Counted from the first letter of the stretch, positions 15,801-47,391 are shown. The stretch: 64,000 nt of DNA from Klebsormidium nitens (GCA_000708835.1 DF237132.1:93424-157423); one strand, 5' to 3'. The notes: generated from the sequence alone by a model not told the origin. Numbers and translations: made by a program.

Positions 15801-18800
15801 GGTGCCAGTCGATCCCTGGGCAGCGCCACTGGCCCCGCTTGACACCGCCGGCGGCGCGGACCCCCCCGGGGGACTGACCGCAATCACCTCCGCAGTCGGA
15901 ATCGCGAGCGCTGCCGTCGTGTTTCCCCCCATCGCGGAACCTGCCCCCGAGTTTGCCCCGATCGTCGTGACGCTTATTCCCGAACCCGCCCGCACCCGCG
16001 TGCCGAGGAACGAGAAAAGCGAATGCGCGGCCGAGCCACGGAGGTGCCGGTCCCGGCTCCCGGAATGGAGGTCCCAGATGTACAGCACGTCATGAGTTCC
16101 GCTAGAGTCCGGGCAGCAGAGGCAGGCGAGGTAGCCGCGCTTGCCGTCCCAAACGCAGGCGCGGGGGGGTGCCACGTGGCCGGGAAAGATGCGCTCGCAG
16201 CGCAGGGTTTCGAGGGACGAGAGCGCTACAGTGGCGTCATCAGAGACGGTGCAGAAGGAAGAGGCCCAGGGAGAGGGGGTGCCGGCGGGGGGGAGCAGCA
16301 GGGCACGGACCTGAACAAGGGAAGAACTGAATTGTCAAGATAGACAAATGCTTCGCTCAGATTGATTTCGCTCAGTATCTTCTTTCTAGTTTCGAAGGAA
16401 TTCGTCGTGGACACAGCATTCTTGAAGACGTCTTGACGTTGAGACGATCCAATCATGTCCTTAGAGAAGCGAGGAAGGGCTTCCAGAGTTACGAAGGGCG
16501 TCGAAGTACTTCGGCTGAAAAGGTAGCAGAACGGGTACTTGGCTCAATGCATATGCCGGGAAGAAGGTGATGTAGTGACCGTGCAGTTAGCCTAACTCTT
16601 TGTAAAGCTGAGAAACATGATCCGGAAAAACGCAGTCCTTCATACACTTGCGAGAGAAGCAATCCAGTGAAACCCACCGGCCCGACATGCTGGCGGAAAA
16701 CCGCGAGCGCAGCGCCCGCCCTGGAGACGTCCCACGCGCGCACCGTCCAGTCGAGGCTCCCCGAAAGTAGCACCCGGCCATGCCCCACATTTAGAGATGG
16801 GGGGGCCTTTTGCTCGGCCAGGCAAAGGACGGCTGCCCCGTGGCCCTCTAGACTGAGCACCCCCTGGTTTGATTCTCTACCCCCCTGAAGCGTTCCAGGG
16901 GGGCTCGCTACCAGCGAAAAGATTCTGATCAGCCCGTCCGCGTAGCCCCTGACCAGGCACGTGGGGGAGAACGCGCCGCCCCCAATCAAAAGGGAGGAAG
17001 TCACTGGTGGCGTCGACGCCTGTTCGAATGTTCCCGCATCTTTTTCTGGTGCTTGAACTGGTTCGGATGAAGGATCCGACTTTCCGACCAACAAACTGCT
17101 GCCCTCTCGAAGGAGCCCCCCCGGTTCTGAATATGCCCACCCGTCTGCTAGACGCGCTTCCTCCACAAGTTCCGCTGCAGGGGGTTGACTTCCCTGCTTT
17201 TCCAAGGCCCCCGAAGAAAGCGGAGGCAGCTTCCACAGGGTAACGCTCGGGTTTGCGCCCCATCCCCCCTCTACAACCGTAGGGCCAACCGTCACCCGGG
17301 CGACGACCCTGCCCGCCACCTGGCAGAACCGGCAGCTGCTGACATCATCCTCCGTCGTCGCCTGCGGGATGCTCGCCACCGCGGACAGGCTCGCCGGATT
17401 CAGTTCTTTCCCGTTTGGGGCCGAGTCTGGATGAGAGTCGGTGGAAAGAAGCCCGACTTGAAGGCTAGAGATGTCGTAGACGACTGCGCCTCCCGCTTCG
17501 TCCCACAGAAGGAGCCGATCCGCGGAGGCGGAGCTTTCCCCTTGACGCAAGAAGAGCGCACCTTGCCAGGCAGAGCCGCCGTCCCTCGTCTCCCGAGCCA
17601 GGACCTTTGCCCCCTCGACCAATCTCACCTCCCAGAAGTTTTGTCCCACCACGGCCACTAACCTTCCGTCAGGCGACACGGCAGCCGAGACACCAGGTTG
17701 TGAATCCCCTCCCCCTGTGAGATCACCGTCCTCCTGTTTCGATTCAGCTTTCTGCTTGCCTGCGTCTGCTTTCGGGCTCTTAGCCTGCGGCTCTTTCCGA
17801 CCGGCCCCTCCTGCAATACCCCACCACACCTGGACCCCCCCGCGCGCGTCCGCCGCCACCAAGGTGTGGCACGCCGCCGTTTCGTAATCGAGGGCGGCCA
17901 CCAATGACTTCACAGGGCCGATTCCCAGCACTCCGTGTGCCACCGTTTGCACCACGGCTAGTGTCGCCGTGTCTACAATCAAAACCACCCCCCTGCCGGA
18001 CCCCCCCCTTTGCGAAGCAGAGGCCCCCGTTGGCGCGATGCCCCCCAGGCCCAGCCCTGACGCCCCCTCGCAAGCAACCGACACGTAGCGCCGTTCCTTG
18101 CCAAGCACGGCAGACGCTTCGGGGACCCCCGCCCAGGGGGGGAGGCGCCGCCTCCGTCGGCAGCGGCCAGTCCCGATGTCCCACACGCACAGTGTGCCGT
18201 CTACACACAAGCTTAGCAGAGCCTCGTCGTCGCCCCCCAGGCCCCCCGACGTTTCGCTCTCGATGCTAGACCTCCGGCGCTGCTCTAGGCGTTCGGCCTC
18301 CTCATAAGCTGCCATTGGAGATGAGGACGGTCCGCCGGAATCGAGAGCCCCCATTTCGAGGCTCCTGTTGCTGGCGTCCGATAGGAATGATTTTTTTTCT
18401 GAAGAAGGACGGTCAGAGAGATCTGCAGACTCTGCACTGGTGCGGCGGCTGACATTGCTGCTGGCGGCGCTGATGCGCCGACCGCTGGTGTCAAGGAAGG
18501 TGACCTGTTTGACTGAGCTCCGGCGCGGGGGGCGGGTGTCTGTGCCGGCGCTGTCGGAACCGTCCGAAGGTTGGCAGATTGCCAGGGCTGAGATGGCCGC
18601 GGAGTGGCCGCAGAGCATTGCCACTGGCCAGAGAGACTGCATAACGCGGACATTATGGAATTATTTAGCAAGTTTGACGTCTTGAGTGCCAGGTTTTGGT
18701 CTGAAGCAGAGTTCAATCCGCGCCCTGTGATTTGCCTGATTTAGCAGTTGAGCTGAAGATTTGGTTGTCCTTGCAACAGAAGATGGCGCAGGCTGATATG

Positions 18801-27400: not shown

Positions 27401-28512
27401 GCAAGTACGCCAAACCGGTGCAACATTCGACCCACTGGCCGCCTTTACCAGCGGTAGAAATACCAGCTTCTGCACGGGTCTCATGAGTTGTAGCGGCGTC
27501 CAATGGGGGACGTCCGATAACGGAGCGTCAGGAGCCAGACCCTTTGAGCTTACCTCTCTGGGCAATCGGTAGCTGACGTAAGCGTGCGTCAGCTCCACGG
27601 AGCCAACGAGGATGGTCACCACCCCGATCAAACCGCCTATAAGTAGCTGCATGAAACAAGATTCGTTTGATACCGACAACGAGAAGAATTCCGGGAGCCA
27701 AAAGCAAGTCGGATTATTTGCGTCCTGTGTGGGCGGCATGTGAACAAAAACGGTATCGAAAAGACGGATGACCTTATTGAACGCTGTGGAGGACCAGGGA
27801 ACGCTTAGAAGACTCAAGCTCATTGAACATACCGTGACTGACCCACGCGTTAAGGTTCGTAAAAGCTGGCTTGCTATCTCACACTTAATCCTCGTTAGCA
27901 CCAAAGCTGCCCATCGAGGGTCTCGGCCAGGGTAATGAAATAAATTGCCTTATTTTTTTCATCTATTTCTCCTCAGTCGCTTTCAAACGAGTCTCTAACA
28001 CGAACCAACAAGCTTAGAAGGCTGTGCCTGACAAACAAAGAAGCTGATGCTTTCATGAAGAGCTGTGTGAAGGCGACCCGTACAAGGAGATCCCCAAGTG
28101 CCTCCAATACGCTCGCGAGAAACCCCTTTATAAGAGCAGCCTTTCCAGTCCTCTCTCCAGCTTGATCAAAGCCCCTGCGTCCAGATTCCGAGCCTTTTCC
28201 CAAATTTCCATCGCCCGACTCTTGAAGAAGACGGCTTTGCTGGTGTATCAGCCTGATCGTGCTGAGGCGATGGTCTGCCCGTGCTGAATGCAGGATATTG
28301 CGTGCTGCAAAGCTACCCGCGAAGATACTGTCTGATGAAACTCTGCTCACTTTACGTACGAGCGCCGTCGAATGCAGGGCGGCGGTTGAGCTTGTTACAA
28401 GACTTCTGACTTGCTTGTCTACGTGCTTGCTTGCGGCGGAGAACGTTAACGTTAACCGTGCCTGTGCAAGTTGCCGAAGCAGGCGAGGGGCTGAGCTCGG
28501 GCGGAGGGCCAT
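24458..28512 (-). CDS. Membrane-anchored P-loop NTPase (STAND/ATPase_2-like), paralogue 1
   Basis: Exon 1 has an Arg/Ser/Ala-rich presequence (MALRPSSAPRLLRQLAQAR...). A hydrophobic exon follows (LLIGGLIGVVTILVGSVELTHAYVSYRLPRE). The NTPase exon reads LDETLNRGS...LRLPRVEL...LVVGAEGTGKTTLLRQ (Walker A). Then come KLPVVVIDA (Walker B-like), VALEV..AS..EVARFL...AFAARFLGGNLQTL, and a last exon ending MDLQPNGCLAP...VEGID*. One donor is GC instead of GT. Confidence 0.78.
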
Positions 28513-29349
28513 GCTGATAAAGAGTTTGTTCAGATGCGAAAGCGCGTCATATTTTGGAAGAGCTTGGACGAGAGCCCAATGTGAGGTGCGTCAGCTACTC
28601 ACTTCGACATTCTTAATTCAGCTCTATAGGATTATCACCTGGCACAATCTGTTCGGTCAAACTGCAAAGTGCGCGCCGGCGGATGTTGGCCGCGGCTCGG
28701 TGCGCCGGCCGCGCGGCCGCAACCAAAGTCACGCACCGCGCGCCGAGGGTTTAGCCCAGGATTTGGCCAGACTGGTACGCGGCCGCGCGCGATGGTAACG
28801 ACACGAACTGTCTGGCAACCGCGGCCGCTCGGCCTAGATGCTGACTCGGAATGGGTCTCCTCGCACAATACCGTCAGACATGCGTCCGCGCTGCGCGGTC
28901 ACTGCACTTGCCGAGGATCGTCAACGATGATATGCCCGACGCGATTGAGTGCACTCCAGCGGAACAGTCGGATATGCGTGCATCGGCTGGCAATCCACAT
29001 CGTCAGAGTACGCGACATCATGCATCTGCAGTTTTTACTTTCAGTGGAGAAAAAGCTGACTGATGATGAGCGACTAGAGTACGCCTGATAATCATAAACG
29101 ATGTATATTCGAAGCGCAGATTCGCATATCCGCGGTGTTGGCCACTGGTAAAGATTATCCAGTATAGCGACAAAAGGCCGTCCAATGAAGAATAGTTGAC
29201 GACCCTCTCACAAGGCTACCCATTGATAACTGAAGTTGCTTCGATCATCATGGATATGTGATTGAACTCACGGGTACTACGGTAAAGCCCTTCAGTGTTA
29301 CTTGTTTAAAAGGGCAGAAAATTAAATGGTTCTCTGTCCTTTTCTACAA

Positions 29350-32300
29350 CTAGTCTATTCCCTCGACTCGTTCATCTCGTAGTAGCTGGAGAAAGGAGCG
29401 CGTGATGCTGTTGCTGAAGCATAACTTTCTGTAGAACTTTCCAACGGGATACGTCTCAGAAAGGAGCCCGGATTTTAAAAGCAGCTTCACCGTCAGTCCG
29501 TGGGGCTGCGTGCGCGCGAGCACTTCTGTCACTTGACGCGGCGCCAGGCATCCCGTTGGCTGCAGATCCATTTCGCGTGCCAGCTCCAGTAGGGCCGTCG
29601 CTTCCTGAAGATAATCCACAGAGAGGTTCTTTGGGAGACAGTTACAAGTGCCTTTGGACAGAAAAAACCGGTAAGCTAGTAGACTTGAGTTGACTCAGCT
29701 GCATTGTTCATCGATATCCAAGGCAGGAACTTCAAGCTTCCAGAAAGAAGCGGCACGTTCTTTCGTTTGGCATTTAAAGGATCAGACAATGGATGCTGCA
29801 GATCTGTAAATTATCCCTGGGTTCAACAGATACGTTGCATTGGCCCTTGACAGCATTGAGATTCAAACCTTACCTTGTTCGCATCTTCGAAGGTCAAGGG
29901 CAACTCTCCCGGCTTGATCGGCCCGTCTGGAACCGTCACAGTCCACTCCGCGCCCAAAGCCCCGCAGCGTCGCACTCCCTCCTCCAGAACAAAGTTGATG
30001 ACACCTGTACAAGACAGCGGAAACCAAGTCGTGATCTAACATGAATCCGGTGATTTGGCTGATTTGGCACGCAAAGCAGTTAAGATTGATTGGCATGCCA
30101 CTTTTCATTTCTGCAGAGCGGCGAAAAGGTCAGCGAAGAGCAGATGTTGGAGACGACATCAATGATGAGAGCCTCGAGAGGCGAGGCTGAAACTATTGTT
30201 GCGGTTAAGGACGTTGAGCCTCACGCGTCTGGAAGTCGGGGCTTCCGGTGAAGCCTGCGAGAGTCCGTAAGCTATCCGCCAGGGTTTGGAGGTTTCCGCC
30301 GAGAAAGCGCGCGGCGAACGCGGCCTCGCGCTCCGTGAGTGTCGGCTGCAGGAAGCGCGCGACTTCGGGCGCAGAAGCCTCTCCGACCTCGAGAGCGACG
30401 GCTCCTTGGCAAAAGTAGTGCCTGAGGTCTGTAAATGTACAGGTTGTCCTTGATTTTACGGAAGGGATCACTTTCCGTGGGCAAAAGTAAGCTTCTTTAC
30501 CGCTGAAAACACAACTGGGAACCGGGCAGGCGCCAGTACGTTTGGGTGACTCTAGAAGCAGAAGCTTCTGAACTATGTAGCGTTTCATCAACGTGGTTGA
30601 AAGAAAGCTTGGTTCCTGAAATCCATCAAGCAAGACGAATATCTCCCCGACTTCTGACTCGGCAGAGGGTACTGACCTGCTGCGTAATGATACAGAGCGT
30701 TCAATGCGGAGCAAATGCTTCTTAATTCAAACCGTTTCCTCAAGATTATGCCTAGCAACAGCACGTACCAGACTGCTATGCTCGAAGCTCTTTTACAGAC
30801 CAACCGGGGACACGTGATCTGATCTTTAAAAGCTTGATGACTTTTCCATAAGCTTTCGAAGAGACACTCAAGCGCTCCGACTTCAACTCAGCGTTTCACA
30901 AGTGTCTGATGCACATTAACCAACGTCAGAATGCGCCAGCAGAAAGGACCGGAACTCGATCCTTCAAAAGAAAAGATTGAACCGTCTTCGGTTAGCGAGC
31001 TGTCAGCTTCTTGAACGGGGGGCTTTTCTTCCTCGCCGTAGAACTCACCTTCTCTTACAAGGTCCATAGCGAAGCCGTCCAGTACCAAGACGACCCGTGC
31101 GTACCCGTAGTTCCATTGCTCAAAAGTACGGAAGAGCTGAGACGTGGCGGCGGTGTTTTCAAAGAAGTCCCGGCTTGTGAGTGCATCGACCACGACGACC
31201 GGAAGTTTGCCCGTCCTCTTACGGTACCGAAAGCATGCACTTTGGAACGCCGCATCCACTTTGCCGCACCAGCCTGGGAGAGGACGTAGGGTTAGCGTTT
31301 TGCATGTGTTGATGTCAACGATTTCATCTCAGAAAATCAATATCCACGAGTGGCATTCTGAAAGACCATTACTAGTACAGGGAGAAATCCCTTTGGATCC
31401 GGAAAAATGACGACAAACAATTTCTTGATTCTAGTAAGCTGTTTGCAGCTGATAGAAAGTCGAGGTTGTGTGAGAAACATGCAACGGAGTGTGACCGAGT
31501 GCGACGGACCGATCGGCCCCTACCTTTCAAGCGCGCTGCTAGCATGCCGTTGTCAAGTCTCCCGCGGCCAATGAGTGCCTTTGCAAGACGATCCCAGAAG
31601 TCGTCTACTGACGTCAGGTTGTCGATATAGATGACCCCGTCCATCTCCCCGGTCGCTTTCAGATCCAGCAGCGCCTGCCGAAGGAGTGTCGTCTTCCCGG
31701 CACCCTCCGCCCCGACCACAAACGAGAGGCGCCGCCCATGATTGTACAGGGGTGCCACGGCCCGCACGAGGTCCGCGGCTTCCTTCTTTAGCTCGACACG
31801 TGGCATTCGGAGCTGTTCTTCTTGGAAAGGCGCGACCTGGCTGCCGCGATCGAAGGTCTTGTCGATCTGCACGTGGCGTCACAAGCGTCCGCCCCGTCGA
31901 AGGAGCCCGAAGAAGGAGAGAATGAAGAATCTAGTGCGTGTATAGGTTGAGCGGTGCTTCAGCGCGTTTGAGAGAAACTTCTAGCGAACTGCTGGGCTTC
32001 TAAATTGCAAACGAGCGGCCCCGAGAGTTTGCTCGTGATGGACTGAGACTGTCAGCTCATTGGATCAGGGACAAATTGAGCGCTGTTCTGTATTCATTGT
32101 GGTCCTCAACCACTTCGGCTTTAGGTAGAAAAAGCCTCCTCGGCGCTTGTTTAAGTGGGTCCAGGTGAGAATAGATACTGTCGTAACACCTGAGTCAGTC
32201 TTGGATTCGAGATCCTCATTGCTGAAACCTACCTTTTGGCCGCTTCCTAAGCGGTCCGCAAACAGATAGATAGTACAGTGGGCTGTAGGAACCACTCACA

Positions 32301-33538
32301 TCATAGCACTTAGAATCGAAACTAAGTCCGGAGCTTACCTCCTTGGGCAATTGATCGCTGACATACGCTTCGGTCAGCTGTATGAAGCCGAACAAGACGC
32401 CCCCCGCCACACCACACCATACCACATAGGCCACGAGCAACTGCATTCCACAGGAGTAAGACATGAAGGTGAAAAGCTTGAATTTGAAAGCGCTCAATAA
32501 AGTGAATGGATTATTATGCGTCCTCTGTCTCTTTTTCACTGGTTGGTATTTGAACAAAGACGGCTTGAAGAGCAACGAAATTGGCAGGAAACAGCGACCG
32601 GCAGAGATGGAAGACTGGACACTAGAATTCCCCAGTTGTTTTGTCGGCTGAGACCAAGACGGACTTAAACCCCAGTGGTTCTTCCCTGTCGGTTTAAGGC
32701 CGGTCGGAGAGCTCCCATTCAAGACCGCTTTGGTCTCAAAGCAGGGGCCTGTGCCCGAAACGGCCTTAAACTCCGCGGGTTTAAGAACGCCTTGGCCTTG
32801 AAGTTTGATCTCCAACACCTTAACTTTTTTTGTAAAGCGGGCTGTGGTTTATAGTGTGGATCTCACTTTTCACTGTACATATTCAAGACCTTAGAGGGAC
32901 TGACCACATTTTAAGCCTACCAAAAGTCGGCTTGAAATCGACGAATCATCCTTTTTAGCACCGCTATATTCTCCGAGAACCTGCTTTTCGAAGCTGCGTA
33001 TTTTTCCAAACCGATCTCGACTTCTTTCAAGCACAGTTTTGGACACCAATTTAACAAGCTAGAACCCTGTGGCCAAGATTAAAAGAGCAAAAGCTCCACG
33101 AAAAAACCCTGTGGGACGGCCACCCGTGTATGACTTTACCTTTAGTATCTCCCACCCGCTTGCCATCCACTTAGGGGAAGGTTTTTCGCAATTCTGTTGA
33201 AATTCCCTGGGGCCCGGCCGGTTTGCTGCTTCTTTCACTTTCTCAACCCCAGAGCTGTCTTGAAGAAGACCGCTGCGCTGGTGGATCAGCCTGATCGTGC
33301 TGAGGCTATTGTCTGCCCGTGCTGAAAGCAGGATGTTGCGTGCTGCAAAGCTACCCGCGAAGATACTGTTCGATGAGATTTTGCTCACTTCACATACGAG
33401 CGCTGGCGAAGGCGCTGCGGTTGAGCTTGTTGCAAGATTTCTCATGACTTGCTTATCTAAGTGCTTGCTTGCGCTGAAGAATCGTGCCTGTGCAAGTTGT
33501 CGAAGCAGGCGAGGGGCTGCGTTCGGGCGGAGGGCCAT
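29350..33538 (-). CDS. Membrane-anchored P-loop NTPase (STAND/ATPase_2-like), paralogue 2
   Basis: Same exon series as paralogue 1: MALRPNAAPRLLRQLAQAR...; LLVAYVVWCGVAGGVLFGFIQLTEAYVSDQLPKE; IDKTFDRGS...LRMPRVEL...FVVGAEGAGKTTLLRQ; KLPVVVVDA; FAARFLGGNLQTL; RVINFVLEEG...LTFEDANK; EATALLELAREMDLQP...VEGID*. GT-AG sites are in compatible phases for the internal exons I checked. Confidence 0.82.
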
Positions 33539-34049
33539 GCTGATGAAGAGTTTGTTCAGATGCGAAAGCGCGAAATGTTCTTGGAAGAGCTTGAACGAGA
33601 GCCAGCCAGCTTGACCTGAATATAAGATGCGTCAGCTACTCACTTCGACATTCTTAATCCAGCTCTAGTACCTGTTCGGTCAAGGTACTGCAAAGTGCGC
33701 GCCAGCGGATGACGTTGGCCGCGGCTCGGTATGCCCGCCGCGCGGCCGCAAACTTGAGTCACGCACTGCCGAGGGTTTGGCCCAGGGTTTGGCGACACTG
33801 GTACGCGGCCGCGCGCGACGGTAACGACACGAACTGTCTGGCAACCGCTCGGCCTGTGCTGATTCATATATTGATTGCGCCGAAATGGTGTCTCAAAAGA
33901 ATTTCATGACAAGGAAGCACATTCCTGGAACGCCGCAGGTCTTGACTGTACGAATAGCCTAGCCGCCACTCAATTGAAGAGATCTTTCCAGGGCAGGTAT
34001 TGTGATCTCTCGAGATTGCCCAAGCGTGCGGCACTCTATAGACGTCACC
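33539..34049. promoter_or_regulatory. Putative bidirectional promoter/5'-UTR spacer between the divergent NTPase and NPL genes (homologues at ~28513-28845 and 37019-37492)
   Basis: About 510 bp lie between the minus-strand ATG (33538) and the plus-strand ATG (34050). It contains conserved GC-rich, partly palindromic blocks (ggccgcggctcggt..., cgcggccgcgcgcga) and gtaacgacacgaactgtctggcaac, found in all three copies. The promoter function is inferred from position. Confidence 0.5.
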
Positions 34050-34535
34050 ATGACGCTCTGGAGCGCCATCCTGAGAGCGCGCTCGCGCGCTTCTAATCGC
34101 CACGCATCTTACGAGCCGCCTGCAAGTGGTTGGTGGACCTGCGAACGTCGGCTGCACCTGACGGCCGCCACCTGTACCGCTTCCGCCGGCGCCAAGGTGC
34201 CTCCCCGGAACCGGAACCGGAGGTCGGCGGACCTCTTGGCGGAGATGCCGCTCTGCGAGCTCCAAGTTGCAGACCCGCAGAATCTCGAAAAGAAGACCGG
34301 CAAGAGCTCTCAAAAGGACCATGTTTTATCTACCGAGCCAGAGGACGAGTTTCTGACGGTGTGTCTCTTGGGGGAAGGGCGGACTTCCTGCCAGCCGAAC
34401 CTGTTCTGCGGACCCGGAAGCAAGTTCCGCGTCGTTTCGTCGGACGATCAGGACCCGGTTCAAGATTACGACGTCCATATAGTCGGACATGAGCTCGCAG
34501 TTAGCCACGTGAAGTATAACAGCGCCCCGCTCTAA
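34050..34535 (+). CDS. Stand-alone nucleoplasmin-like (NPL) domain protein, copy 1 (161 aa, single coding exon)
   Basis: MTLWSAIL...RRLHLTAATC...FLTVCLLGEGRTSCQPNLFCGPGSKFRV...DVHIVGHEL follows the NPL pattern of HD-tuins/FKBP39-53 (M.FWG...LH(L/V)SQA.L...LC.L...Q..L.L.F....F......VHL.GY). Uninterrupted ATG-to-stop ORF with three paralogues nearby. Confidence 0.72.
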   Translation: MTLWSAILRARSRASNRHASYEPPASGWWTCERRLHLTAATCTASAGAKVPPRNRNRRSADLLAEMPLCELQVADPQNLEKKTGKSSQKDHVLSTEPEDEFLTVCLLGEGRTSCQPNLFCGPGSKFRVVSSDDQDPVQDYDVHIVGHELAVSHVKYNSAPL

Positions 34536-35579
34536 GAAAGAGCGTTTCACACGAAAGGCAGGTATCAGAAAATTTATCCATCCATTCTTGGAGTTTCCTT
34601 TTGGGGGTTTGAAGGTGCTCAAAGCGCGGTAGTTGTAGGGAGGCACAGAACTTCGTCACGACCGTGCATCAAGGCGGGCTGACGCACCGTCAAAAGTAGG
34701 TCAAAGGCAGAAGATTTCTGGGCTGTCCTCAAGTTTCAGGCAAAGGGAGGCTCAACGAGGTATCCAAGGACAGCGCTTTTTGAAAAAGTGTTACGCAGGG
34801 CGAGATCGCAAGGCCAATGACAAATGGAACGTCGTGCCTATTGCTAACCTGACGTGTGCTTCTTATGCAGGCGGATCTAGAGGGGATATGAAAGGCTAGA
34901 GCTCACAGGATGTCTCGATCTTCATTTGATCTGCTACTATCATGTAATGAGTTTTTGCAGCTAAACTTGGAGGCTTGCCGGCGGATGCCACTTGCCAATG
35001 CGCGGCGGCATCAAGTCATGCTCCGCAGAGAGTTTAGGTTTTGGCCGGCACGAACCGGCGGCCGTTTACGCTTTGGCCTTGTGACAAAGCGGTATCTCGG
35101 ATGGGAGTTATAAGTGGTCGTGATTCCAGGTCCATTTGCCAGCTTGCCAGATATTTGAAAGTGCCCGGGAAACGGGTGGGAATGTGTTGGGGTTTGATGA
35201 CAGTCTGCATGAGATACAAAAGTTACGTTGTTGTCCCGCGATTCGTTTCTAGTCACATCGTTGACACGTGACAGGCCTAGAAAGACAGTCCTTCGAAGTT
35301 TTGTGCTTCGACTCCTGGTCACATCTTCCAAACTTGACAGACAGCTCTCATTCTTTTCGCGTCCCACTCTAGTCACATCACCAAAAGTTAGACACTATTG
35401 GACAGACAGCCTCCAACAACTACGGATCGCAGTTTTCAGCGACGTTCAAAGGAGTTGTGCTTAAAGGGCTGACGTCTGCAAAAGGGTTCGTTACCTAGCT
35501 GCCACCCGACTGCAGCCAACTCTCCAGGGCAGGTTGCTATTCTTCATCATTCTTACTCTTTCATTGTACTCAAAGAACC

Positions 35580-36047
35580 ATGACGCTCTGGGGCGCCATT
35601 CTAAAAGCGCGCTCTCGCGCCTCAAACCGCCATACTTCTTATGCGCCTGGATGGTTTAACCCGGGCCGGCGACTGCACCTGACGGCCGCCACCTGTACTG
35701 TTTCCGCCGGCGCCAAGGCGTCTTCCCGGAACCGGAACATGGCGGAACTCTTGGCGGAGATGCCGCTCTGCGAGCTCCAGGTTGCAAAGCCGCAGAAGAA
35801 TAAGGCCAACAGTGTCGCTCCCAAGGACCGATTTTCATCTACAGAGCCAGAGGACGAGTTTCTGACGGTGTGTCTCTTGGGCGAAGGGCGGACTTCCTGC
35901 CAGCCGAACCTGATTTGCGGACCGGGGAGCATGTTCCGGGTGGCTTGGTTGGACGAGCAGGAGACGGGGCAAGATTACGATGTCCATATTGTGGGACACG
36001 AGCTCCAGATTAGCACCGTGAAACACAAAAGCGTTGGGCCGCTTTGA
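35580..36047 (+). CDS. Stand-alone NPL-domain protein, copy 2 (155 aa)
   Basis: MTLWGAILK...RRLHLTAATC...PLCELQV...FLTVCLLGEGRTSCQPNLICGPGSMFRV...DVHIVGHEL. The ORF is intact. Confidence 0.72.
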   Translation: MTLWGAILKARSRASNRHTSYAPGWFNPGRRLHLTAATCTVSAGAKASSRNRNMAELLAEMPLCELQVAKPQKNKANSVAPKDRFSSTEPEDEFLTVCLLGEGRTSCQPNLICGPGSMFRVAWLDEQETGQDYDVHIVGHELQISTVKHKSVGPL

Positions 36048-36792
36048 ACGAGCGTTACAGGAAAGAAAGGTGGGTACTGACACACGTAGCCGTTTGATCT
36101 GGTGCTCCGGATTCCTGAAGATGCGCGTTGCTGTTGCAAGAAATACAGAGCGGAAAAGTCTTTGACATTAAGACTGGCTGATCCACCTTAGAGCTTTTTT
36201 TTAGGGTGGAGTGAGTTTCTCAAACGTCGATTGAAAGCAGGATATGCTGGGCTGTTTCAATTTGCCCCTTGGGAAACGCTGACGCAAATAGCGCTAAACA
36301 ACAGAACACTTTGTAACGTCCGGGCCGTGCCTGGGTCGAAGTGCAAGCCGACGACGTCAAGAGTCCTGCCTTTTGCTGACGTGTTGTGTTCTTCATGCAG
36401 GCAGCCCTTGAGTTGCTGGAGCGCACCGAATGCCTCAATTCGCGTATGCCCATAAACAGAAATGCCAAAGGGCGATAATTGTCATGGTGACACGCTGCTC
36501 TGCTGTGGGCGATAAAGCAAAGATCTTAAATAACACTATCTCAATGTTTGATCTGCGAGTTTCCTGTGATGTTGAAGAAAGAGAACAAGCTGGTCTCTGA
36601 AGGGATGCCTTGTCTTTACGTCCACAATACATTCAGCTGGCCGCCTTCTTCCACCACTGGCAGTCCCCCGGCTTTTACCGTCGTAGATTATTGCGTTGTG
36701 ATGCCATACTGAATTTGAAATCATGATCGATTGCCACGCGTCGCCTATGCAACCTCGAGTATCTGCATGACCGCTGCATGCGTGATTGAATC

Positions 36793-37018
36793 GGGCGACT
36801 GTCGGCCCGTGCTGAAAGCAGGATATTGCGTGCCGCGAAGCTCCTAGCAGGAATTCGGTCTCATGGAAATTTGCTCACTTCACATACGAGCGCCGTCGAC
36901 TGCGCGGTGGTCGCGCTTGTTGCAAGAGTTCTGAATATTTGCTTGTCTACGTGCTTAATTGCGCCGGAGAATCGTGTTGCCGAAGCAGGCGAGGGGCTGA
37001 GCTCGCGCGGAGGGCCAT
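36793..37018 (-). pseudogene. Frameshifted 5' fragment of a third P-loop NTPase paralogue
   Basis: Begins ATG GCC CTC CGC GCG AGC TCA GCC CCT CGC CTG CTT CGG CAA like the intact copies. It then lacks about 10 nt (ttgcacaggc) and hits a TAG shortly after. Homology to exon 1 stops at ~36793 (after ...CAGCACGGGCCGACAGTCGCCCG). No NTPase exons follow. Confidence 0.85.
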
Positions 37019-37492
37019 GCTGATGAAGAGTTTGTTCAGATGCGAAAGCGCGAAATGTTCTTGGAAGAGCTTGAACGAGAGTCCAGCTTGAGCTGAATAT
37101 GAGGTGCGTCAGCTACTGACTTCGACATTCTTGATACGTCAAACCGCAAAGTGCGCGCCGGCGGATGTTGGCCGCGGCTCGGTGCGCCGGCCGCGCGGCC
37201 GCAATCAAGTCACGTACCGCCGAGGGTTTACAAGTTCAGGGTTTGGCCAGACTGGTACGCGGCCGCGCGCGACGGTAACGACACGAACTGTCTGGCAACT
37301 CGGCCTGTGCTGATCCGAATTGGGCCAGGATGGTGTCTCTGAGAGTCTCAAACAACTTTCATGACACATTCTTGAACGCCGCAGGTCTTGATTGTACGAA
37401 TAGCCTAGTCCCCACTCAACTGAAGAGATCTTTCCAGGGCAAGCGAAAGCTTTTGAGATTTCGCAAGCGTCCGGCGCGGTATAGACGTCACC

Positions 37493-37975
37493 ATGACGCT
37501 CTGGGGCGCCATCCTGAAAGCGCGCTCACGCGCTTCCAAGCCCCACGCATCTTACGAGCCGCCTGCAAGGCCTTGGTGGGCTGACGAGCGTCGGCTGCAC
37601 CTGACGGCCGCCACCTGTACCGCTTCCGCCGGCGCCAAGGTATTTGGCCGGAACCGGAACCGGACCCGGACCACGGCGGAACTCTTGGCGGAGATGCCGC
37701 TCTGCGAGCTCCAAGTTGCAGACCCGCAGAAGAAGAAGGCGGAAAGCGTCCCTCCCAAGGACGACATTTCATCTTCTGAGCCGGAGGACCAGTTCTTTCC
37801 GGTGTGTCTCTTGGGTGAAGGGCGCACTTCCTGCCAGCCGAACCTGGTCTGCAAACCCGGTAGCAAGTTCCGGGTGGTTTGGTTGGACGATCATGAGGAG
37901 CCGGGTCCAGATTACGGTGTCCAAATCGTTGGACAAGAGGTCACGATTAGCAAGTACGCATTCGTCCCGCTCTGA
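37493..37975 (+). CDS. Stand-alone NPL-domain protein, copy 3 (160 aa)
   Basis: MTLWGAILK...ERRLHLTAATC...FFPVCLLGEGRTSCQPNLVCKPGSKFRV...GVQIVGQEV. The ORF is intact. Confidence 0.72.
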   Translation: MTLWGAILKARSRASKPHASYEPPARPWWADERRLHLTAATCTASAGAKVFGRNRNRTRTTAELLAEMPLCELQVADPQKKKAESVPPKDDISSSEPEDQFFPVCLLGEGRTSCQPNLVCKPGSKFRVVWLDDHEEPGPDYGVQIVGQEVTISKYAFVPL

Positions 37976-39532
37976 GATTTACGAATTGTCGAACGAAAGG
38001 TGGGTATCAGAATCTGGAATGTAATTCTTTTGAATGACTCGGTTTTGAAGCGGTGTTGAAGCGCGTTTCTGTTGCAGAAAGAGACACAAACCGGAAAGAA
38101 GTCTGTTAAGATTGGATGATGCACCATCAAGCTCTCCTTTTGCATTATTTGAAATCACCTGATTCCCGTTGAGAGCAGATTAACCTGAGCTGATGATTAC
38201 ATTTTGAAAAGTCCGAAAGAGATACCACCAAGACAGAGGCTTGTTGAGACGACGGTGTTATGTCAGGGCCGGAATGCAAGCCCAAGACGTCAAAAGAAGC
38301 TGCCTTTGGCTGTATGACGTCCTGTCCACCGTATGCAGGCGGCCCTAGAGGTGAACTGACTGGAGCCCATTGAACGGGATGTCTCAATCTCGTATGAGCA
38401 GAAAGTGGCACGTCGAAGATAGTAGCAACGAGTAGATGTGCAACGAGCAGCGAAGCCAAAAACTTTGACACTTGGCATTTGACGATGGTCTCACTCTCGT
38501 GCTTTTCCTTGAAATTGCGCGGGGACGGAAGCGAGTTTATGATGCTATGGCCTTCACATACATTCGCTATCTAGCATGGATCCCTGGTCGGGGATGTCGC
38601 AGGACCGGAATTGGAAATTCTGTACATGGAGCAGTTGAATGGTCCTCGTAAAATGGGGCACGGAATCGATACACGTGCACAGTCTTAATCTGCTTTCGTA
38701 CTGATCCCGAACTCGTCAACATTGCCAACGCGTGGCTATCGAAGTCAGCTGCAGCGTAGGGAAGCGCGGCTTCAGATCAATGCAGTTCGGTTCAAAATCA
38801 GGGAAGGGAGACAAAAAACGACAAGAACAATGATGTTGGGGTATCACCATCTTCTTAAGCTTTTTCGGTTTATTTGCTGTTCATGATTGAGGAAGCAAAC
38901 TTCAGCAGCTACAATCCCAGGAGCGGGCCAGCGGATGCTGGCTTCGGCTTGGGGGCGGCCGTCGCATAGAGTCACGTACCGCTTGAGGGGTTGGGTTTTG
39001 ACCGGCACGAACCGGCAGCCGTGTACGGGAGACAAAGCGGAGTGTTCGGATTTCCAGGGCCAGCCAGATGTAGATGCACTTCCTATCGAAATTCAGTGCC
39101 CGGGAGACGGGTGGGAATTGGTCTGGGGTTTTATAGATGTCATAAGTTGCATAAGGTTCGGTGTTGCCTGCGGTCCATTTTTCTAGTCACATCATTGAAA
39201 CCTGACAGGACTAGAATACAGACAGCCTGTTCTGCTTCGATCCCAGCTAGTCACTTGACAGACCTGGACAGACAACCCTCATTCTCCGCCAAATTCAGTC
39301 ACATCATCAAGAGTTAGACAAGTGCTAGACAGACAGCCCCCCTTCACTCTCGCCGTCCTGGATCGGGCTCGCAGTCCTTGTCAGCGTTTAAAGGATTTGT
39401 GCACGAAGGGCTGACATATCTGCAGAAGGGTTCGTTACCTAGCTGCCACTCAACGCCACTCAACTGCAGCCATCTTTCCAGCGCAGGTTGTCAATCTTCT
39501 CATTCTTACTCTTTCCTCGTACTCAAAGAACC

Positions 39533-40006
39533 ATGACAGTCTGGGGCGCCCTTCTAAAAGTCCCCTCTCGCTACGCATCTTACGAGCCGCCAGGGGGGTG
39601 GTGGAATGACGAGCGTCGGTTGCACCTGACGTCCGTCACTTGTACTGCTTCCGCCGGCGCCAAGGCGTCTCCCCGGAACCGGAACATGGCGGAACTGTTG
39701 GCGGAGATGCCGCTTTGCGAGCTCCAAGTTGCAGATCCGGGGTTTGGCAAAGAAAAGGCCGCCACGAGCTATCCCAGGGACCGTCCATTTGCTGAGCCGG
39801 AGGAGCTGTTTCAGACGGTGTGTCTACTAGGCAAAGGGCGCACTTCCTGCCAGCCGAACCTGATCTGCGGACCGGGGAGCATGTTCCAAGTGGTCTGGTC
39901 GGACGATAATGAGAAGCCTGGTCATGATTACAAAGTCCACGTTGTGGGACACGAGCTCACAATCAAAAAGTACGGAAAGTACGGATCCGCATGCGTCCCC
40001 CTCTGA
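39533..40006 (+). CDS. Stand-alone NPL-domain protein, copy 4 (157 aa)
   Basis: MTVWGALLK...ERRLHLTSVTC...FQTVCLLGKGRTSCQPNLICGPGSMFQV...KVHVVGHEL. The ORF is intact; the ATG at 39533 is in the same context (aagaaccATG) as copy 2. Confidence 0.72.
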   Translation: MTVWGALLKVPSRYASYEPPGGWWNDERRLHLTSVTCTASAGAKASPRNRNMAELLAEMPLCELQVADPGFGKEKAATSYPRDRPFAEPEELFQTVCLLGKGRTSCQPNLICGPGSMFQVVWSDDNEKPGHDYKVHVVGHELTIKKYGKYGSACVPL

Positions 40007-41376
40007 AAGAGAGCCTTCCACGCGAAAGGTGGGCATCACAAAATGTATCCATTGCCATTTTCCTCCTGTTTTTTAAACGTGCTTAAGCTCGTTGCTGTTG
40101 CAGGAGAGACAGAACGGACAAGACTGTGACAAGACTTGCAGATCCGCGGCGGAACATTCTTCTAGGGTGATCTGAGTTTCTTGAACGCCAGCCAAGAGCA
40201 GGAATTACTGGGCTATTTGCACATTTACTGACGTATAACATTATCGTGATCGAGTGTATTGGAATGTTTGTGACAGAGCCGTGCGGCCGGGTCAAAGTGC
40301 AAGCCCGACGACATCAAGGATCCTGCCTTCTGTTGATGTGACGTGTTCTTCATGCAGGAATACGGCACATGCAAAACGGCCCTGGAATCGCTGGAGCCCA
40401 CAGGATATCTCAAGTCGGGTATGCTCATCGACAAAGTGGTCGGAAAGTGGCCGGTAGTAAAAATTCCCTTCATAGCGGCGGACGATTTCGGAGTGTTCCG
40501 GTTTAATTCCAGTTTAGCTAGTTTCCTGTACCTTGCGGAAAGACAGCAACCTTGTCTTTGGACATTTCAAAACCACAATACATACATCCGCCGTCTTGCA
40601 TTGTCGCTCCGGCTATTTCCGTTGCCGATATGCTCGCAAATCACCTGGCGGTGCAGGCTTAAGACACTCATGCACTCAAGAATGGAGCGTCGGACGGACA
40701 TAAGAATCCAACTTCCGTGATCAGGATGTCGTACTGATTCAGTCGACGACCGGTACTGATTCATGCAATAATTTGGAACTAAGTTCGTCAGCGTCGCTTA
40801 TATAATTACGCATAGGTGTCCATGCATAGATTTGCTGCGTGGCTGGCATCGCGGCAACATCGCGCGACTCTTGTGGACGTACAAGGGAATCGGTCTCGCT
40901 TACGATCCTTATACGCCGGCGGCGGGCTGGACAAAGATGTCTCAAGTTGGTCTCATGTGTCACGCATCATTCATTACATGGCTGGATCGCGCTTTTTGGC
41001 CTAGCAGTGACCAGCGCAATGAGTGACTGGACTGACATTCCAAGCGCAGCCATGCACCATGAGAGTAACTTTCAGAAACAACGCAGCCGGCCGCTCTGAC
41101 CACTTTATATTGAGCTTGATCGAGTGCGCCAAAAAGCTGAAAATGATGTTGTCAAACCAATTGGACATTTTCGAAGGCACCCTGTGACATGCGGTGTTAT
41201 CGAAGCTTCATGCAAAGCTCCGTGACTTGGACTTTTACCGGATCCTAAATGATCAAACACTGGACTGGACTTTGCGGATGGACTGCATGCTACAGCTGAG
41301 CTGTATAAGAAGACCTTAAATACAACACCCAAATAACAAAGTCTCGTGGCAGTGTCTCTACGACTGTATCGCTGCT

Positions 41377-47391
<6,015 letters not shown>

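Follow-up and report, generated by a model that had tools for sequence, protein, structure and literature searches.

Four tandem genes for short, tail-less proteins in Klebsormidium nitens and their possible relation to the nucleoplasmin-like fold

Introduction

Nucleoplasmin-like (NPL) domains are eight-stranded jelly-roll beta-sandwiches that open their proteins at the N-terminus and assemble head-to-tail into pentameric rings, the core of each subunit resting on the outer face of the next, with strands 1 and 8 against strand 5. They occur in three classes of protein, the nucleoplasmins, the HD-tuins and the NPL-FKBPs, and in each class more than 100 charged, mostly acidic residues follow the core (PMC4414354). 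The pore of these rings is marked by a conserved His-x-Ser on strand 3, with R-x-T as the fungal variant, and by Asp(-x-Asn) on strand 6, and the fungal members carry roughly 50 extra residues inserted between strands 4 and 5 (PMC4414354). In the NPL pentamer of FKBP39, the residues with the most inter-subunit nuclear Overhauser effects are Phe4, Tyr47 and Leu84, and Ile48 N is bonded to Ser82 (PMC4414354). The core of AtFKBP43 alone does not bind histones; the acidic arms are needed (bioRxiv 10.1101/2022.04.25.489347). Here, we analyze a 64,000-nucleotide stretch of the Klebsormidium nitens genome (GCA_000708835.1 DF237132.1:93424-157423, "the window"), which carries at positions 34050-40006, on the plus strand, four intact paralogous open reading frames (ORFs) of 155-161 amino acids. 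An earlier sequence-only reading of the window had described them as four tandem, stand-alone NPL genes lacking an acidic tail, an FKBP domain and a zinc finger.

The anatomy and transcription of these genes are solid, and the claim about their fold rests on one class of predictor. We propose that the proteins are highly diverged NPL-type jelly-rolls that form homo- or hetero-oligomeric rings, a reading to which we assign a probability of roughly 0.55. The NPL assignment of the four proteins is partly supported; the NPL ancestry of the family and any function discussed below are inferred.

Results

The sequence-only reading was right about the number, tandem arrangement and length of the reading frames. 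An in-frame stop lies upstream of each, and the conserved region begins at Met1. The database annotates all four genes (KFL_001830220, KFL_001830225, KFL_001830230 and KFL_001830235, here copies 1 to 4; Table 1) as "hypothetical protein", and a literature search on the four identifiers returned nothing relevant. Identity among the copies is 67-73% for the proteins and 77-84% for the DNA. The first eight residues are near-invariant, and the motifs common to the copies are the M-T-L/V-W-G/S start, LHLT, VCLLG.GRTSCQPNL.C and F.V. The motif VH(I/V)VGH, which had also been quoted as general, is present in copies 1, 2 and 4, and copy 3 has VQIVGQ instead. Five cysteines had been described as conserved in all copies, and the alignment indeed contains five invariant columns (C42, C69, C105, C114 and C120 in copy-1 numbering). 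The proteins end 12-17 residues beyond the VH(I/V)VGH motif (last strand), with a conserved P-L-stop in all four unspliced ORFs. Each has a mass of about 17 kDa, an isoelectric point (pI) of 7.0-8.7 and at least as many Lys and Arg as Asp and Glu residues. The sole acidic run is E-P-E-D-E, located in the loop between strands 4 and 5.

Evidence for transcription comes from the contigs of four public RNA runs, from four studies, placed on the window. These contigs carry GT..AG joints on the plus strand and therefore represent RNA. For copy 3, the whole ORF is contained in single unspliced contigs in all four runs. They start at 37364-37396, giving a 5' untranslated region (UTR) of about 100-130 nt, and show no upstream splice joint. 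Contigs cover copy 2 from 35844 on, the 3' part and the stop codon being included in spliced contigs, and an unspliced contig runs from 39057 to past 40006 across copy 4. Positions 34050-34447 of copy 1 are without any RNA contig in the four runs. The contigs contain two splice joints in all, both on the 3' side of the stop codons, in copies 2 and 3. Since the introns begin 22-24 nt past the stops, they are 3'-UTR introns; for copy 3 an intron-retaining contig was seen as well. A donor motif of the type GAAAG/GTGGG lies 20-27 nt past the stop in all four copies, and the donors of copies 1 and 4 are predicted by homology (Table 1).

The deposited gene models differ from this picture. In them the donor precedes the stop while the acceptor is the same, and four unrelated C-termini result, with protein lengths of 121, 156, 167 and 176 amino acids; in the KFL_001830230 model the C-terminal third of the ORF is spliced away. 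No RNA contig supports the annotated pre-stop splicing, and the transcripts of the four runs contain no exon by which an acidic tail, FKBP domain or zinc finger would be added. Because the stop codon is retained and the introns lie only after it, the proteins are truly short. The description of the proteins as stand-alone and tail-less therefore holds, and splicing from a site upstream of the stop to an exon encoding a tail or an FKBP domain, which would have contradicted it, was looked for in the RNA contigs with a negative result. The analysis thereby corrects four database gene models.

In run X1, contigs tile positions 38337-40006 without a gap, from the 3' exon of copy 3 into copy 4. This could reflect read-through transcription or a 5' UTR of about 470 nt in copy 4.

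The repeat layout is that of a duplicated two-gene unit, (1,2)(3,4). Positions 33304-34570 match 36794-38012 at 79%, and 35008-36453 match 38964-40428 at 69%. The copies differ by indels at about 10 positions, all of them multiples of three. The ratio of nonsynonymous to synonymous divergence (dN/dS) is 0.39-0.46 in five of the six pairs, with Fisher p values of 7e-5 and 3e-4 for the two tested. In the youngest pair, copies 1 and 3, it is 0.69 and not significantly below 1 (p 0.15). The lowest value, 0.28, belongs to the N-terminal block (alignment columns 1-34). Together with the near-invariant start, this is more in keeping with a structural strand 1 than with a targeting peptide. The in-frame indels, the dN/dS of mostly about 0.4 and the spliced plus-strand RNA mean that the ORFs are more than chance, and the genes are under purifying selection.

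Within the alignment of the coding sequences (CDSs), the synonymous divergence (pS) drops to 0.136 in columns 34-78 (RRLHLT...CELQVA), about three times lower than the 0.36-0.46 found elsewhere. The pattern points to gene conversion or to a constraint acting on the nucleotide sequence.

One could regard the genes as young duplicates drifting to loss, that is, as transcribed ORFs of no functional importance. The missing RNA contig over the copy 1 CDS, the dN/dS of the youngest pair, the tiny size of the family with its apparently truncated outside relative (described below) and the four inconsistent C-termini of the curated annotation would agree with such a scenario. We nevertheless consider it very improbable, given four intact ORFs with indels in frame only, a dN/dS of about 0.4 in five of six pairs that is significantly below 1 in both of those tested, and transcription of three copies across several independent studies.

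The family is narrowly distributed. When a HMMER family profile was run against 1.84 billion representative proteins, the matches were the K. nitens proteins and three others, P0005, P0006 and P0007. Two of these were judged spurious: P0005 (1045 residues) is a perfect-repeat protein in which 16 stretches matched, and P0007 consists of bacterial Ig-like repeats (E 1e-4). P0006 is a 103-residue gene call on a metagenome contig from JGI (L001) that is syntenic with the K. nitens window, the same GH47 alpha-mannosidase gene lying downstream on the opposite strand with 65-86% amino acid identity per segment. The family is present there as one copy. Its conserved part is the C-terminal region of about 80 residues (LAEMPL.ELQVA ... 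VCLLG.GRTSCQPNL.C..GS.F.V ... HI.G); the charged loop of about 25 residues is absent, and the N-terminal half, a stretch of low complexity, is unrelated. Two metagenome scans yielded no further relatives, and a word search returned the four K. nitens proteins only. The family consists of four K. nitens genes and one syntenic metagenomic relative, and is restricted to Klebsormidium.

On the same contig, an F-box/LRR-like ORF occupies positions 1800-2788 on the minus strand; its antisense strand matches the family's N-terminal motifs by chance. A match to the N-terminal half at 2331-2410 was considered as a possible N-terminal exon of the relative and rejected, being antisense to this ORF and due to chance.

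The proposal of an NPL-type fold draws on several observations. In the ESM-Atlas, the clusters nearest to copy 2 are all NPL (PF17800) or Nucleoplasmin (PF03066), scoring 0.88-0.89 and sharing 187-195 of 256 features, and its ten best family-bearing matches all fall within one family or clan. Both AlphaFold2 runs, low in confidence as they are, place strands where NPL strands 3, 4, 5, 7 and 8 are expected. The motif H36-x-T38, on the presumed strand 3, is invariant in the four copies.

The assembly was modeled with ESMFold2 as four chains of copy 3 and one of copy 2, alongside three controls. The complex reached an ipSAE (interaction prediction score from aligned errors) of 0.68 (0.69/0.68/0.68), compared with 0.02 for the best control (range 0.00-0.02); that mark was attained by 51 of 78 solved complexes and by 2 of 108 mismatched pairs. 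The predicted local distance difference test (pLDDT) of the partner, copy 2, was 65-67, and at least 72% of the contacts agreed between runs. In the model, copy 2 contacts exactly two neighbors through two different faces. The lowest-error contacts join its strand 5 (FLTVC, 95-99) to residues 3/5 (strand 1), 39-43 (strand 3) and 144/146 (strand 8) of a neighbor. These predicted contacts of strand 5 with strands 1, 3 and 8 agree with the kind of interface seen in the FKBP39 NPL pentamer (PMC4414354). The sequence-only reading had offered mixed pentamers among the paralogs as one option. A head-to-tail assembly of copies 2 and 3 is predicted at 0.68 versus 0.02, so mixing of paralogs is supported by prediction; the output gives the partner two neighbors, and closure into a five-subunit ring lies beyond it.

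A considerable body of results weighs against the NPL interpretation, in addition to this limit of the modeled assembly. The sequence-only reading had named a search with hidden Markov models (HMMs) as its first check, and it failed there: hmmscan of the four copies gave no row for Pfam NPL (PF17800) or Nucleoplasmin (PF03066) at E<=10. The same was found at this threshold for N-terminally trimmed copies 2 and 3, and for the loop-less relative P0006, whole or as residues 1-70. The family profile retrieved no NPL protein among the 1.84 billion, and no PDB sequence matched the family. The sole recurrent Pfam row was CUB_CDCP1_4th, partial and sub-threshold, in all four copies (E 4e-4 to 0.14). 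On the shallow alignments available, AlphaFold2 reached pLDDT values of 37.7 and 44.0, too poor for fold comparison, and fold searches with the second, better model (44.0) returned noise. The Atlas score of 0.89 is below the tool's 0.9 line, recognition was low (2132), and the outside relative had no Atlas match. That relative, the only one, keeps the C-terminal 80 or so residues alone. In a provisional register, the presumed strand 6 (S-C-Q-P-N-L-x-C) contains an invariant Asn and no Asp. Gln replaces both His residues of strand 8 in copy 3, the copy whose RNA contig cover is the most consistent. Finally, both positive results, from the Atlas and from ESMFold2, come from language models of the ESM type and are hence not independent, and the ESMFold2 pass may be a memory of solved NPL pentamers. 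The claim of an NPL beta-sandwich finds no support in any of the HMM tests and is favored by the Atlas neighbors and the predicted ESMFold2 assembly; it is not refuted.

These results bear on a second explanation, in which the genes form a lineage-specific orphan family with another small beta-rich fold, possibly a novel one. Here, the C-terminal region of about 80 residues would be the conserved unit, and the resemblance to NPL domains a coincidence of motifs or of the language model. The uniformly negative HMM tests and the inability of AlphaFold2 to fold the protein point this way. So does the relative, which retains LAEMPL.ELQVA...HI.G, has an unrelated low-complexity N-terminal half and finds no Atlas counterpart, and so do the weak partial matches to CUB_CDCP1_4th, which belongs to another beta-sandwich family. 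Such a fold would not account for Atlas neighbors that are all NPL families, nor for a predicted interface that reproduces the published NPL strand pairing while the controls remain at 0.00-0.02. Moreover, the strongest purifying selection within K. nitens falls on the N-terminal half, and the variable insertion coincides exactly with the site at which NPL domains are known to carry theirs. We regard an orphan fold as possible, if on the unlikely side.

The genomic surroundings raise a third explanation. Copy 1 shares a divergent region of 511 bp with a gene for a P-loop (STAND-like) nucleoside triphosphatase (NTPase), whose N-terminus (MALRPNAAPRLLRQLAQARFF...) resembles a presequence, and the module of NTPase and small gene has been duplicated. 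The small proteins might then be targeted to an organelle, M-T-L-W-G-A-I-L-K-A-R-S-R-A-S being a mitochondrial or plastid presequence instead of strand 1, and act as partners of this divergently transcribed STAND-like NTPase. In copies 1-3, residues 1-20 indeed include four Lys/Arg and lack acidic residues; a helix at 3-13 was predicted by the first AlphaFold2 run (pLDDT 37.7). Presequences usually drift in sequence; the first eight residues of these proteins are near-invariant. In copy 4 the N-terminal stretch contains just two basic residues, and in the ESMFold2 prediction residues 1-5 belong, with low error, to the subunit interface. By tblastx, no NTPase neighbor was detected on the syntenic relative's contig, which makes the pairing look like a side effect of segmental duplication. 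Organelle targeting is, in our view, improbable.

Table 1. Positions of the four genes, their 3'-UTR splice sites and the adjoining upstream segments in the window.
Feature	Position	Strand	Remarks
Copy 1, KFL_001830220	34050..34535	+	161 aa ORF, intact
Copy 2, KFL_001830225	35580..36047	+	155 aa ORF
Copy 3, KFL_001830230	37493..37975	+	160 aa ORF
Copy 4, KFL_001830235	39533..40006	+	157 aa counted from conserved ATG
3'-UTR intron, copy 2	36070..36400	+	331 nt, GT..AG, starts 22 nt past stop; joint 36067->36399 (cut +2), runs X1 and X4
3'-UTR intron, copy 3	38000..38338	+	339 nt, GT..AG, starts 24 nt past stop; joint 37997->38337 (cut +2), all four runs
Predicted 3'-UTR splice donor, copy 1	34557..34568	+	GAAAGGCAG/GTATCA, homologous to read-verified donors of copies 2 and 3
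Predicted 3'-UTR splice donor, copy 4	~40029	+	homologous to donors of copies 2 and 3
First exon of P-loop (STAND-like) NTPase gene	33059-33538	-	divergent from copy 1
Divergent intergenic region, 511 bp	33539..34049		between copy 1 and NTPase first exon; duplicated upstream of copy 3
Duplicate of NTPase exon 1 and promoter segment, upstream of copy 3	36794..37475		no long ORF; no RNA contigs in 36637-37233

The duplicate of the NTPase segment upstream of copy 3, having neither a long ORF nor RNA contigs, is a remnant. The minus strand holds two paralogous multi-exon genes of this kind (27973-28512, 33059-33538, 31372-31872). They have a P-loop exon and N-termini (MALRP..APRLLRQLAQAR) that resemble presequences. 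Their matches to nSTAND_NTPase5, AAA_22 and NB-ARC are weak and below the cut-off. The first exon with its promoter occurs in three copies, at 28220-28822, 33258-33848 and 36794-37475. The one at 28220-28822 has no small-protein gene beside it, and that at 36794-37475 is a remnant only.

On the other side, a multi-exon gene for a GH47 class I alpha-mannosidase (41359-45303, minus strand) lies tail-to-tail with copy 4. The layout of GH47 and small gene is kept on the contig of the Klebsormidium relative (L001 10378-16117), with one small-gene copy there. A 717-residue ORF with WD40 repeats (PF00400, 32 bits) at 16489-18642 on the minus strand is apparently unrelated to the small genes.

Discussion

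We propose the following model for the tandem family, in which each of the four genes would comprise one coding exon and a 3'-UTR intron. The products would be all-beta, near-neutral proteins of about 17 kDa, each filled entirely by a diverged NPL jelly-roll. The subunits are predicted to join head-to-tail, and the homo- or hetero-oligomeric rings that result would probably be pentamers. Such a ring would be a bare scaffold. Its specificity may reside in the internal loops, namely the basic RNRN after strand 3 and a K-rich, then acidic stretch (S/T-E-P-E-D-E) between strands 4 and 5, or in the His- and Cys-bearing strands, which line the pore in canonical NPLs.

With no acidic tail, a near-neutral pI and an AtFKBP43 core that by itself does not bind, canonical histone chaperoning by these proteins is unlikely. 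The proteins could instead serve as a bare scaffold, modulate canonical NPL pentamers, or form a ring that binds metal or responds to redox conditions. The Gln residues at both strand-8 His positions of copy 3 weaken the case for a simple His-based metal site. A more specific version would be a tail-less, near-neutral hetero-pentamer of the paralogs, evolved in this streptophyte alga and freed from histone chaperoning. It might act as a poison or modulator subunit that reduces the number of acidic arms in HDT/FKBP53 pentamers, or as a ring, lined by Cys and His and responsive to metal or redox state, that serves a new client. This version is speculative, and we consider it rather unlikely.

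If the fold is as proposed, K. nitens would offer a natural NPL core that is tail-less, transcribed and under selection. With it, the functions of the ring by itself could be tested directly, for instance scaffolding, binding metal in the pore or titrating canonical subunits. The family would also gauge how far the NPL fold can diverge past detection by HMMs. If the fold fails, what is left is a small orphan gene family of one algal genus.

One comparison is with the CUB domain (PF25142, the fourth CUB of CDCP1), which is likewise a Cys-containing beta-sandwich and which matches all four copies partially, over VCLLG...SCQPNL.C..GS.F.V. The match scores 13-21 bits, below the 28-bit cut-off, and covers only positions 20-57 of the 88 in the profile; in addition, the N-terminus is charged and lacks the hydrophobic core of a signal peptide. 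Owing to this sub-threshold partial score and the missing signal peptide, we rejected CUB membership, and the match is probably a similarity of pattern.

With the nucleoplasmin/nucleophosmin core (PF03066), the proteins would share a small, pentamer-forming jelly-roll core with no further folded domain, and Nucleoplasmin is among the nearest Atlas clusters. The elements S-A-G-A-K, Q-P and V-H-I-x-G-x resemble G-A-G-A-K, Q-P and V-H-I-S-G in the NPM1 core, which we treat as a lead only. Nucleoplasmins differ in having a nuclear localization signal and acidic tracts, A1 within the core and A2/A3 within the tail, whereas the acidic sequence here is limited to the E-P-E-D-E of the internal loop. 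They also differ in that no sequence-level match was obtained by hmmscan, in the PDB or in the profile search of 1.84 billion proteins.

The HD-tuins (HDT/HD2) and the NPL-FKBPs (Drosophila FKBP39, yeast Fpr3/4, Arabidopsis FKBP53/43) include the families from which the nearest Atlas clusters come. They continue into a charged, mostly acidic tail of more than 100 residues, with or without an FKBP domain or a C2H2 finger, all of which the four proteins lack. The K. nitens family is further set apart by the lack of a significant HMM match, its pI of 7.0-8.7, its five conserved Cys and the absence of an obvious equivalent of the pore Asp. Conversely, it resembles their NPL domains in a hydrophobic-W-G strand from residue 1 and in H36-x-T38, which may parallel the His-x-Ser/Thr of the third strand. 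Its variable insertion of about 25 residues is located between strands 4 and 5, as in the fungal NPL-FKBPs (PMC4414354), and the predicted head-to-tail arrangement, with strand 5 packed on strands 1 and 8 of the neighbor, is also theirs. If the fold assignment is correct, an NPL core confined to Klebsormidium that has no tail, carries conserved Cys and is close to neutral would be new among these families.

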